From: Diadema antillarum
Taxonomy: Eukaryota
DNA length: 64,000 nt
Assembly (NCBI RefSeq): GCF_040938485.1
Contig: NW_027271016.1
Location: 1,674,001-1,738,000 of the forward strand
Direction of reading: 5' to 3'
Program-made: the position numbers and the translations under genes
Notes under the pieces: generated by a model
Told to the model about the DNA's origin: nothing
Databases searched by the model: none
The model's input: only the letters and a program-made list of their open reading frames with translations
Shown here: positions 41,814 to 45,965 of the stretch, piece by piece
Position numbering within the stretch: position 1 is the stretch's first letter
How the letters are laid out: each line of letters begins with the position of its first letter

Positions 41814-41859
<46 letters not shown>

Positions 41860-41874
41860 GTGCATGAGGCTGAA

Positions 41875-42017
41875 TGCACTATAACAATATAAGCACCGAC
41901 AAATTCTGAATTTGCCCCGAAGGCCAGTTATATTCAATGAGGCCGCAGGCCGAATTGAATATAATTGCCTGAGGGCAAATTCAGAATTTGGAGGTGCTTG
42001 GTACTTGTTATAGTGCA
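41875..42017. repeat. ~143-bp imperfect palindrome with a GAGGCCGCAGGCCGA loop
   Basis: Arms TGCACTATAAC..AAGCACCGACAAATTCTGAATTTGCCC..TTATATTCAAT and ATTGAATATAA..GGGCAAATTCAGAATTTGGAGGTGCTT..GTTATAGTGCA. Confidence 0.9.
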
Positions 42018-42236
42018 ATAAGATGTCATGCACTATGTGATATATAAAATAGCATACATACCCAGGCAAGATAAGCCTACATCATTTCTAACAGTTACAC
42101 GTGTCTACACAAGCAATAATACCAGTTTCTTTGAACCTGTGTAGACAAAATCCTGAAGATCCAAATTAGTCTAGGGTCTACGTGGTTATATCTAACGTTT
42201 TCTAGGCCCTACGATAGGTTAGGTCTAGGACCCTAG

Positions 42237-42539
42237 CAGAGACTCCAACTCTCCCGTTTTCGACGGGAGATCTCCCGCCGAAAGCCCATTTTTGCACAAT
42301 CTCCCGTTCTCCCGTTTGAGATTTGATTTCTCCCGCCCTGGCTCTGTGTCTCCCGGTGGAAAGGATTTCTTACTTATTTCTATCGTATGTTGAAAAAATA
42401 AGCCTTAGATAGCACCAGAGAACATCTAGAATCCTAGGAACTTCGCGCTTCGCACACATCAACTTGGAGTCTCCCGTTTGCTAGGGGTTTCGGGCGGGAG
42501 AATCTCCAGATCAGAAGGTGGTTGGGGTTGGAGTCTCTG
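42237..42539. mobile_element. hAT-like MITE with a 6-bp TSD
   Basis: Perfect 13-bp TIR CAGAGACTCCAAC / GTTGGAGTCTCTG, CCCTAG directly on both sides, and internal CTCCCG/CGGGAG repeats. Confidence 0.85.
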
Positions 42540-42829
42540 CCCTAGGGGCCCTGGCCTAACGTTTTTATACTAGATCTACGTACCGGTACGCTGTACTGTA
42601 CGTCACTTATACGAGCGACAGAGCTAGTCAACACTTGACCCTACAATAGGTCTAACACTAGCTACCATGGATCTAGCAGTAACACTAACAGTAACACGTT
42701 AGACGCCCTACTTACTGCACTGTGGGTCCAGGACCAGGACTAGATGATGTTTTGTAGGATTAGGGATCTACTGGATTTAAACACAAGGCTCGTGCCAGGC
42801 CCCATGCCATGCTGCACATGCGGATTCCG

Positions 42830-42901
42830 AGAGTGTGTTGTGAATGTCGTAGTAAAGTTCATAGCGTAGCGTGGTGATCAAAGAGCGCTTATTTTAGCGT
42901 A
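42830..42901 (-). pseudogene. Crypton-like ORF remnant, downstream piece
   Basis: Reads KRSLITTLRYELYYDIHN. This resembles the Y.K.SL.T.RYGL motif that follows FYAEVR..DG in Crypton/DUF3504-related proteins. Confidence 0.6.
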
Positions 42902-44765
42902 TAGACCGATTCAAGCGACTGTTCATGGAAGTGCGCCCTCTTAAGGCGACGCCATAACTGGGGGCCAAACAGGCTGGGTCGGCAAGCGCCCTGCGTGCGT
43001 AGCAAGGGTGCCAGCGGCAGCCAGTGCTTTTACCACCCGGCGCCAGCCGGCCAGCTAGCTATCTCTGGCGCTGGCAGCGATCGACGCATCTGGCTTTGTG
43101 ACAACAAGAGTCTACTTTTTTTTTTCGCTAGCTAATTAAAAAAAAAAAAAAAAATAAACAACTTATACCGACTATGAGTGAATGGGTAGATGACATACGG
43201 CTGTAGCCAAAACTTGAATTTCAAGGTAAATATCGGCACGATCCGTGAATGTTTGTAGACTATTTCTTTGGCGATGACTTGGGTACTCGCGTGTAAGCCC
43301 CGTAGATTCACATTTGTGGAAGAGAATAAAAACCGCTGGGGAGAATTATTGCTAGGCGCAGGCAGACGTCTTGCTAATAAGCCTAGGCTGTTGACAAGTT
43401 AACTGATATATAAGTAAATACAAATAATGAATAAGAATCTTGAGCTAGATATGGCGTAATAAATTGCAAGCAATCAGTTAACTTAACCTAATTTTAGGGC
43501 AGGCTAGGCTTTACTCGGGAGTGTCGGGCCAGCAGAGTACAATCTGTCTAACGTTAGATCTTGTCTAGAAATCTAGGCAAGAGTCCAGACTAGATCTAGA
43601 CCTATTGACTTCTAGAACCCGTCCCTACACGACGGTTGTCGATAACTTCAGGCAAGCCTAACTAAGCAAACCAAACGGAATATAAATCTAGGCGTTTCTG
43701 ATAGGCCGTATATGCCTAAACTTACGAAACGACTACGTCGCCTGATGTCTACAACCAAAACTTCTACTGCTTTAGGTCTAAGTAACCTTGCATAACATCA
43801 CGCTAACGCCTAATATCATAATCTACAAAAGTGATTTTTAAATCATACTTTATTAGTATGATTATGAAACGGATGTTTGCCACCATCCATGATTTAATAT
43901 TTATAAGTATCACTTTATCAAAAGTCAAATTCAGAGTTCCAGGCCAAAATTGAATAGGCCTATGGTTAATTCAGTGCTGAACATTGAAGAAGTGCAAACA
44001 ATATAAGAATTTAACGCATCTTGAAACATTTATTTAGCTGTAGTGTAGACTGTAAAATGTTTGTCATAATAATACAGTCTAGCCATGAAGTGTATTCTAA
44101 CTTTGGCAAGTAGGACACGAAGGATTTGTTAAAAAAAAAAAAAAAAAATCAGTGAATTATCAAATTCTTTGATCTTTGATCTAAACTTGTCTTCTAAGAT
44201 GAACAACTTATTTTACGAATATGCAGTGATAACCTAATTAAATAGAGAATCTAGTAGACATAGTTTGTTTCGAAATCTGTGCATTTTTATACCGTTGTAT
44301 TTTACTTAATTGTCTTAATTTTGCCTTGATTTATTATGCGTCAGCGGTGTCTGAATTTCACACACTGCCGTGCTGTTTCCATTTCCATTTTTCTGTTATT
44401 TGTGTACCCAACAACTGCACGATGTGTTTTCCTGATCCTTCCTTTGAAGCTTTCAAAGTAGATCAATATGTCTGAATCACTCAATTTGTCCAAAAGAAGG
44501 GCATTAAAAGCCGCTGAATGACTTTTCCACACAGTGAGTAAACAATCACAATTATGATATTAGCGCGGCGCCGGCGGTCGCCGGCCGCGGCGCAGCGGCC
44601 AGGCCCGGCTAACTATGCGCGATGGGTACGCTAGGCTGCTAGCTGCAAGTGCAACTCGCTGGGTAGCTAGCTCGCTGGAAGCCCCCGTTGGCTCCCAGTT
44701 ATGGCGACCGTTATAGCGCCGCTAGCGGCGGTAGGTGAATAGGTCATCGAAATTGAATCGGTCTA
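42902..44765. mobile_element. TA-flanked non-autonomous DNA transposon with TAG...CTA termini (possibly Academ-like)
   Basis: Perfect 13-bp TIR TAGACCGATTCAA / TTGAATCGGTCTA. A second inverted motif CGCCATAACTGGG.GCCAA at ~42950 and 44687-44706. GC-rich subterminal arms and TA on both sides. It interrupts the Crypton-like ORF. Confidence 0.75.
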
Positions 44766-45013
44766 TACTGTACACGCCACACGCTGCCCATTTCCACGGC
44801 GCACTTCCGCGTAGAATGTACGGAGGAAGCGGCACAAATCATGGGTTGACTTGCTCAGTAATATCCGTCGGATTGATTCCTTTTTCAGAACAGTAGGAGT
44901 CCAAAATTCGTAGGGCGTATTTGATGGCATCCTTTGTGTCCTTATTGTCTAAGATACTGTTTATGTAGATCAGTCTCTCTAAAAGTAGCGAACCTGTTCA
45001 TTTCAGCTTCCAT
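44766..45013 (-). pseudogene. Crypton-like ORF remnant, N-terminal piece (two frameshifts)
   Basis: MEAEMNRFATFRETDL / NSILDNKDTKDAIKYALRILDSYCSEKGINPTDI / LSKSTHDLCRFLRTFYAEVRRGNGQ. Matches the remembered Crypton N-terminal pattern (RF......L....NK....TK.A....F...C......L...L..FYAEVR..DG). Confidence 0.75.
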
Positions 45014-45588
45014 GTTTAAATCTACCGCTGAAAGTCTAGTCCCATCACACAGATAAGTTGCTGGCATAGCCAGCCTGCGAGAATTGGGAATAACGATAAT
45101 ATCGAGCAAAACATATCGCGGTTGTGGCGCAATCGCGTTGATAAGGTGCGGGATTCAAGTACTCGATGATTAAAATGAGGGAGCAAAAACCGATATCAAA
45201 TCGATAGTGGGTTATCGTTTGCAATCGTTATATTTTGCGTGCACTATAACTTTTGTCGTGCACTGCCGGCCTGTATCATAAGTATGTATGCTATTTTATA
45301 TATATATATATGTATATATATATGTTCAAATTCTCTAGTATGTGAATACATAGGCCTACAATGCATATGTATATCTATGTATATGCACATACATGTATAT
45401 ATGCATATTTATTTATTTATTCATTTATTTATTTATGTATTATATAACACATATTATATACTCATATATTCCTTTATTGTATAATGTTCAAACAATTTGA
45501 TTTATGTGAGCCATGACGGGCGAAAAAGTTTAAATCCGTCTGTATGTGTCCGAGAATGAAAGCGACGGGGAAGAGGATGATGGTTTAA

Positions 45589-45965
45589 AGGGATTGTATA
45601 GTTTTGGTTGAGACCTAACTTCAGGTTTCTAACATTTTTTGTTGAGATAATTATAAGCCTCTTTTGAAATGTGAAAGAGCATGCAATTCCAAGGGGAATA
45701 CAAGGTATATTTGATGGAAATTGGTTTACAAATGGCTGAGATATCCAAAACAGAGCAATCCTGATAAAAGGTGGGACCCACCTGTTATTATGATCGCTTT
45801 GTTTTACTTTGTTTTTGGATGTCTCAGCCATATCAAAGCCGATTTCCATCAAAACTCGAATTCCTCTTAAAATGGCATGCTGTGTACTATTTCATAAGTG
45901 GTTTCTTAGTATCTCGCAAAAAGTTATAGTCCAATCCTCGTCTCCACCAATACTATACTATCCCT
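45589..45965. mobile_element. TTAA-flanked MITE (Kolobok-like), copy 1
   Basis: TTAA-AGGGATTGTATAG ... CTATACTATCCCT-TTAA (12/13 TIR match), with an internal palindrome centred on GTGGGACCCAC. Confidence 0.88.

Follow-up and report, generated by a model that had tools for sequence, protein, structure and literature searches.

A 64-kb stretch of the Diadema antillarum genome (NW_027271016.1, positions 1,674,001 to 1,738,000; source DNA label G000:C128:1674001-1738000), referred to here in its full length as the window, carries on its minus strand a broken open reading frame (ORF) that stops at an insertion and resumes on the far side. An earlier reading, made from the letters of the window without database searches (the sequence-only reading), had taken this to be a decayed Crypton-like element whose ORF can be rebuilt across a 1.86-kb insertion. 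What kind of element is this, where does it begin and end, and what could have moved it? We found that the window copy is very probably a dead copy of a high-copy, non-autonomous derivative of a CryptonA-type transposon of ~2,065 bp, moved in trans and afterwards hit by two insertions. The composite lies on the minus strand (Table 1) and consists of one copy of a 1,278-bp repeat plus two nested insertions, an element of 1,860 bp and a MITE (miniature inverted-repeat transposable element) of 303 bp. By itself the locus is unremarkable, being a dead copy, with nested insertions, of a non-autonomous DNA transposon; 'dead' here means non-functional as a gene, and the copy's own ends are intact.

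DNA searches of the source genome with the two halves of the repeat returned 414 and 374 first-look candidates, of which 40 per half-search were scored (identity 97-100% and 90-100%, respectively). The two halves are contiguous at other genomic loci. In a local BLAST of the region against 40 loci, one repeat unit corresponds to window positions 45310..44764, 42891..42539 and 42236..~41845, and once both insertions are removed in silico, the window copy aligns end to end with other copies at 91-97% identity. Both insertion sites are uninterrupted in 24 other copies. The sequencing runs, searched in contig form, likewise yielded contigs in which the sequence runs on without a break across 42891/44764. 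Unique flanks of the window were found in the runs of organism A only; the Crypton derivative, the MITE and the 1.86-kb element have high word depth in the runs of both organisms A and B, and the three families are thus common to two related species.

An alignment of 25 copies together with their flanks places the 5' end of the repeat at the junction of ...TATAT and AAAATAGCATAC (about 45303-45297 in the window) and its 3' end at ...CATGCACTATATATATAATAT(A) (about 41846), and the flanks of the aligned copies are unrelated outside both points. The boundaries of 41858 and 45250 proposed in the sequence-only reading were therefore misplaced, as the true ends lie outside them. The 11-bp direct repeat that had been said to bracket the unit does exist, at 41875-41885 and 45240-45250, and is kept in all copies; however, it is an internal motif (the octamer ATAGTGCA, present in five copies) found 30 and 55 nt inside the true ends. 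Long terminal repeats are absent, the extreme ends are weakly inverted (ATAGCAT versus ATAGTGCAT), and the boundaries are TA-rich and fuzzy. That the two ends would occur together elsewhere, as the same reading had anticipated, is borne out by hundreds of copies and also by a coding element of ~2.07 kb; the 5' head is kept in non-autonomous and full-length copies.

Translations of the minus strand from the ATG at 45013 give pieces of one protein in three successive frames. When a natural intact ORF was compared with the window by tblastn, its residues 1-16 aligned at 45013-44966, residues 16-53 at 44964-44860 and residues 55-81 at 44855-44775, with a combined E-value of 2e-21 for all three segments, so that a coding remnant with two frameshifts is present as first described. 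Both frameshifts occur in nearly all copies of the 1,278-bp family, which indicates a master copy that was itself already non-coding; in a few older-looking copies the N-terminal part lies in one frame (e.g. L040:3060-3290:-). Through the continuation of the remnant beyond the 1.86-kb insertion, family copies stay in a single frame (e.g. L003:1352-1681:-). The window copy also has private changes, namely a TGA close to 44841, an insertion of 5 nt (42891-42895), and gains of 3 nt around 42871 and of 4 nt around 42806. The window copy is thus not an autonomous copy that decayed privately, as had been supposed, but a member of a pre-existing non-autonomous family with which it shares its frameshifts.

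The private 5-nt insertion creates the stop noticed at first reading, and because of it the frame also fits when the 1.86-kb insert is removed together with one TA. The arithmetic of that reconstruction was sound, but the history it implied was not: the uninterrupted family site reads ACAGTATACGCTAAGCGC, and both TAs are therefore older than the insertion. Only residues 1 to ~92 are left in the window copy, and the catalytic domain, the C-terminal region that was not found at first reading either, is absent from the whole 1,278-bp family; lacking it, the window copy is filed as non-autonomous. Protein queries throughout were natural open frames or stop-free pieces. Between a natural 77-aa copy of the remnant and the full-length ORFs of loci L049, L054, L056-L062 and L069, identity is 73% over 63 aa (E = 4e-27), in agreement with the homology to Crypton/DUF3504 proteins that had been proposed for the rebuilt peptide. 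Pfam searches with the window's own peptide pieces gave a weak QRICH1 hint (E = 0.17), and the ESM Atlas features of these pieces gave hints of integrase SAM-like domains that are not decisive.

The coding element to which these ORFs belong is ~2,065 bp long and has the same 5' and 3' ends as the derivative. Its 10 copies are 92-99% identical to one another and have unrelated flanks, with divergence setting in right at the ends. Positions 8-544 of the de-nested window copy align with the coding loci at 81% identity and positions 999-1313 at 86%. Several full-length copies have open frames of 442-508 aa, or 434 aa when counted from the conserved ATG (reference natural copy, L058:1351-2652:+). 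In Pfam this ORF scores 30.2 bits for DUF3504 (cut-off 29.7), 27.2 for QRICH1 and 25.3 for Phage_integrase. The closest database protein is an uncharacterised protein of Diadema setosum (97% identity); further relatives, with E-values down to 1e-283, come from echinoderms, bivalves, corals and a horseshoe crab and bear ZMYM2-like, KIAA1958-like, QRICH1-like or integrase names. Across 12 relatives, R175/R177, K209, H298, R301, H324 and Y333 are invariant. A sequence search of the PDB with the full ORF had zero matches; a fold search with its AlphaFold model (mean pLDDT 69.7) returned Cre first (E = 2.8e-6) and human QRICH1 (9hjt_H) third. Within the ~2,065-bp unit no second ORF was found, and no reverse transcriptase (for which Pfam gave no signal), DDE transposase or Rep/helicase. 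The parent encodes a single 434-aa tyrosine recombinase, with an N-terminal SAM-like/QRICH1 domain, a DUF3504/integrase catalytic domain and a Cre-like fold, and is of the CryptonA type as Kojima and Jurka (PMC3212892) use that name.

A search of the genome with Pfam models gave 36 matches to QRICH1 (PF25561) and 93 to DUF3504 (PF12012), many of them in single open frames of 320-590 aa. The best matches to both models, L041 and L042 (G000:C273:183247-186561 and C699:2813227-2816541), are split in an intron-like manner and probably represent a host QRICH1/ZMYM-like gene. The presence of such an intron-containing locus is what could be said for the view that the window holds a pseudogene of a domesticated DUF3504/ZMYM-like host gene and not a transposon. 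The family is dispersed in hundreds of copies whose ends are sharp and common and whose flanks are unrelated, and its parent keeps all catalytic residues, which together make the chance of a host pseudogene practically nil. L041 and L042 are 99.6% identical over 3.3 kb, and many other matches likewise come in near-identical pairs on different contigs, which suggests that the 1.75-Gb assembly holds both haplotypes, in which case the copy counts given here are inflated up to two-fold. Elsewhere, three DUF3504 matches with 529-aa open frames lie ~2,592 bp apart (G000:C104:750907-756490), in what looks like a tandem array of another Crypton family.

How the derivative relates to its parent is seen from the alignment of the two. 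The derivative keeps the first ~600 bp of the parent (the leader and codons 1 to ~92) and its last ~320 bp, while ~1.2 kb between them (~647-1843 of the extracted L058 copy) is replaced by ~410 bp without alignment. The sequence-only reading had called the element an internally deleted Crypton; Crypton descent and a deletion both stand, but the deletion is not a simple one. Over the 5' 180 nt and the 3' 240 nt the derivative is 90-100% identical to the parent, as against 60-85% between, which is the usual signature of cis-acting ends under selection. Non-autonomous Cryptons are known and outnumber their parents (PMC3212892), and a non-autonomous CryptonA derivative is in itself an already known kind of element. 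Like CryptonI-1N1_RPro, CryptonA-1N1_OL and CryptonA-1N2_OL (PMC3212892), the present one shares a few hundred bp at the 5' and 3' sides with its parent and far outnumbers it; unlike them, it belongs to another host and sequence family, keeps the frameshifted start of the ORF and contains the ~410 bp that cannot be aligned.

The ends themselves have an elaborate architecture (Table 1). Five ATAGTGCA octamers occur in the 64-kb window, all five within the terminal regions of the element, and the boxes take equal relative positions in the parent. Positions 42040-42061 are the inverted 22-nt head and the adjoining ~15 nt are the inverse of the 3' tail, so that the whole of 42025-42061, which we call the splint, is an inverted copy of the joined tail and head. 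It is followed in order by a 146-nt palindrome, an 8-nt spacer and the tail. The two strands of the palindrome fold equally well (-63.5 and -64.9 kcal/mol, z ~ -13), and in head-to-tail dimers the palindrome reaches across the joint (-77.4 kcal/mol). Natural dimers of this kind, at L014, L020 and L030, carry the predicted joint, in which ATGCACTAT faces ATAGCAT over a TA-rich spacer of 13 nt in a lox-like arrangement; such genomic dimers would imitate circle junctions. Natural hairpin-deletion variants also occur, at L049, L062 and L030, where the centre of the palindrome is lost and the tail is kept.

Table 1. Features of the composite element, in window coordinates and in minus-strand order
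Feature	Position	Strand	Remarks
Whole composite	41846..45303	-	25-copy alignment, flanks diverge beyond; de-nested copy 91-97% identical over full length
5' head, terminal 22 nt, with degenerate box ATAGCAT at 45288-45294	45282..45303	-	Perfect 22-nt inverted repeat of 42040-42061
5' leader, with ATAGTGCA box at 45240-45247	45014..45281	-	First 180 nt 90-100% identical to full-length element
ORF remnant, residues 1-81 of 434, in three frames, with private TGA near 44841	44775..45013	-	tblastn E 2e-21
1,860-bp non-coding element with terminal inverted repeats	42904..44763		TATA at 44764-44767 and 42900-42903; absent in 24 other copies
ORF remnant continued, KRSLIT(T)LRYEL, ~residues 82-92 of full ORF, then diverged sequence	42777..42899	-	
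303-bp MITE, terminal inverted repeat beginning CAGAGACTCCAAC	42237..42539		CTAGGG at 42540-42545 and 42231-42236; absent from other copies
Splint, inverted copy of joined tail and head; boxes ATGCTAT and ATAGTGCAT around TA-rich spacer	42025..42061	-	
146-nt palindrome, both arms ending in ATAGTGCA boxes	41875..42020		Kept in full-length element
3' tail: 8-nt spacer, inverted ATAGTGCA box (41857-41864 on the plus strand), TA-rich terminus	41846..41874	-	

This layout has counterparts in other classes of element, two of which were weighed as explanations of the locus. A non-autonomous rolling-circle element of the Helentron/Helitron2 type that had captured a fragment of a DUF3504 gene would likewise repeat its 5' end, inverted, subterminally on the 3' side, with a 3' hairpin after it, would form tandem arrays (here with a 1,237-bp period) and would have AT-rich targets. 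The partner of ~2.07 kb with identical termini, however, encodes a tyrosine recombinase alone; the supposed captured fragment is the start of the partner's own ORF in the same place; and Rep/helicase is absent from the unit, whose ends are unlike Helitron termini. A Helentron was suggested by the arrays and by an inverted repeat that is asymmetric and accompanied by a hairpin, but the coding partner with the same ends is recombinase-only; we regard a Helentron as exceedingly improbable. The second explanation, a remnant of a DIRS-like tyrosine-recombinase retrotransposon, draws on the splint, which as the reverse complement of tail plus head formally resembles the internal complementary region (ICR) of DIRS elements (PMC13465315). 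It is nonetheless very unlikely, given ten full-length units of ~2.07 kb with a single ORF, no reverse transcriptase or RNase H and flanks that diverge at the ends, and a protein of the DUF3504/QRICH1 (CryptonA) type. The likeness to the DIRS1 internal complementary region (an internal stretch complementary to the joined termini) and that to Helentron/DINE-1 ends (subterminal inverted repeat, 3' hairpin and tandem arrays) are ones of layout alone; unlike either, the present elements have no reverse transcriptase and no Rep/helicase.

The CryptonA derivative is found preferentially in simple TA repeats. Among 44 sampled 5' flanks about half contain (TA)n, as do many 3' flanks; around half of the copies lie within (TA)n on both sides, some (TA)n tracts contain two oppositely oriented copies, and the exact 3' boundary shifts within the TA run from copy to copy. 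Solo insertions that lie outside (TA)n are found at L016, L005, L007 and L028, among others. Cryptons are known to insert via microhomology between one terminus and the target (PMC9977147). For the present family, we propose that the recombinase of the parent moves derivative copies in trans and would recognise ATAG(TG)CAT boxes at both ends and close to them. Joining of the ends, in a circle or a head-to-tail dimer, would bring two inverted boxes to flank a TA-rich spacer and so create a lox-like core. Crossover would take place in the TA-rich spacer with TA-rich targets, which would lead to insertion into (TA)n, to fuzzy TA-rich boundaries without target duplication, and to tandem arrays. 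The ends of resident copies would themselves be good targets, and insertion alongside them would give rise to the arrays. After its insertion, the window copy was struck by the 1.86-kb element and the 303-bp MITE and gained its private indels and stop. The mechanism so pictured fits the Goodwin model as well as what was observed directly in Chlamydomonas (PMC9977147). With its recombination ends intact, the composite of 3.46 kb could in principle still be mobilised.

Tandem arrays also form the case for a different mode of spread, in which the repeat would be a Crypton-derived satellite amplified mainly by unequal crossing-over or segmental duplication and not by recombinase-mediated transposition. 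Arrays with the 1,237-bp period have a second kind of joint, GTTATA joined to TAAAATAGC, which is 33 nt shorter than the full one and is without the tail box, and those at L002, L030, L035/L036 and L040 share this one shortened junction. Most sampled copies, however, are solo with unrelated flanks, and about half lie in (TA)n, including some pairs of opposite orientation inside one (TA)n tract; we consider a satellite very improbable. If we may speculate, dimers with the short joint may be unresolvable and may move or amplify as blocks.

We return to the reading of the locus as a trans-mobilised CryptonA derivative, against which several points weigh. The Phage_integrase and QRICH1 scores of the partner ORF are slightly under the Pfam cut-offs, and ~410 bp of the derivative's interior cannot be aligned to the parent. 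The TA runs in the flanks could in part be the result of microsatellite growth from the TA-rich ends of the element and not of target choice. Inference also enters at three places: binding of the recombinase to the ATAGTGCA boxes, the position at which crossover takes place, and the lack of a target duplication.

We suggest, as a tentative proposal that is somewhat less probable than its contrary, that the end structure is the so far undescribed recombination site of animal CryptonA elements, made up of inverted boxes around a TA-rich spacer, a splint beside a palindrome, and arm boxes. If this is true, it would explain both the targeting of (TA)n and the tandem arrays, and the joint may be displayed on a cruciform that is extruded or on a strand that is folded. 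Little is on record about which sequences animal Cryptons need in cis; Kojima and Jurka (2011, PMC3212892) reported them to be free of every kind of terminal repeat. In the present family, hundreds of young derivatives and ten near-identical coding parents fix the exact ends of an animal Crypton, and the boxes, the lox-like joint, the inverted joint and the palindrome offer concrete substrates with which to study how a Crypton recombinase chooses and cuts its DNA. The Crypton recombinase family gave rise to domains of vertebrate ZMYM2/3/4, QRICH1 and KCTD1, whose DNA-binding preferences are of interest.

Parts of this architecture recur in relatives in other animals, each represented here by a single copy with inferred ends. 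The Lytechinus variegatus relative (P0003, 60% protein identity; locus L071) has (TA)n borders and a head box AAATAGTG, which returns inverted in the tail; upstream of its 129-nt palindrome lies an inverted pair, and the tip of its hairpin is similar. In an oyster relative (P0050, 42-44% identity; locus L072), a 15-nt stretch of the putative 5' head is inverted directly upstream of a hairpin with 29-nt arms and ~105 nt overall. In two other Crypton families of the source genome (L066/L067 and L063/L068), a crude, non-exhaustive inverted-repeat scan found no large palindrome. The L066/L067 family is ~1.94 kb long with an ORF of 455-459 aa, starts with CGTGCGTGCGTGTAC and ends with GTGTGTGTGTACGTGT, and has, at either end and embedded in GT-rich sequence, short direct repeats of the GTGTAC type; the simple repeats that are targeted may thus differ between Crypton families.

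Set against known systems, the element agrees with the CryptonA elements of PMC3212892 in its single ORF for a DUF3504-type tyrosine recombinase with an N-terminal SAM-like domain, in having no long terminal repeats and, apparently, no target duplication, and in its animal host, Cryptons of sea urchins being already known. It differs from them in its repeated 8-9-nt end box, internal inverted joint, 146-nt palindrome and bias towards (TA)n, and is compact at ~2.07 kb. With CryptonF-1_cRei, an active Chlamydomonas Crypton (PMC9977147), it would share insertion through identity between a short terminal motif and the target (CACCG/CAYCG there, TA-rich here) and the lack of a true target duplication; however, that element belongs to group F and not A, and its activity was directly observed, whereas here activity is deduced from young copies. 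As in Cre/loxP and the simple core sites of tyrosine recombinases, a Cre-like fold is paired with joined ends that form two inverted boxes around a spacer, although the spacer of the putative site here is TA-rich and 12-13 nt long in place of 6-8 bp, and the head-side boxes are imperfect.

Both nested insertions belong to large families of their own. The 1.86-kb insert noted at first reading is real, but its proper extent is the one in Table 1, and it is flanked by TATA and not by TA. It has 11-bp terminal inverted repeats beginning GACCGATTCAA, with TATA on both sides, and the genome has at least 335 first-look candidates of its family (91-99% identity). The family site without this insertion is also given as ACAGTATACGCT, from which it follows that the element either duplicated TATA or made no duplication, and that a TA duplication does not apply. 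TATA flanks other copies of the element as well as the one in the window (a 4-bp TATA duplication or none), and GC-rich subterminal regions of ~150-200 bp are present at both ends. Relative to the Crypton derivative, organism B has more of the element than organism A does. The MITE that had been placed from 42237 is likewise real and is missing from other copies of the repeat. It is an extremely abundant, young element with a 6-bp CTAGGG duplication (at least 2,252 first-look candidates in the genome, 98-100% identity among those scored), and in the runs it exceeds the unique flanks in word depth by about four orders of magnitude. Another MITE copy sits in the tail of a further Crypton copy (L018). 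Just upstream of the Crypton copy in the window, positions 45585-45900 match the unrelated loci L008, L012 and L019 in both orientations at 67-79% identity and look like an older palindromic or MITE-like repeat.

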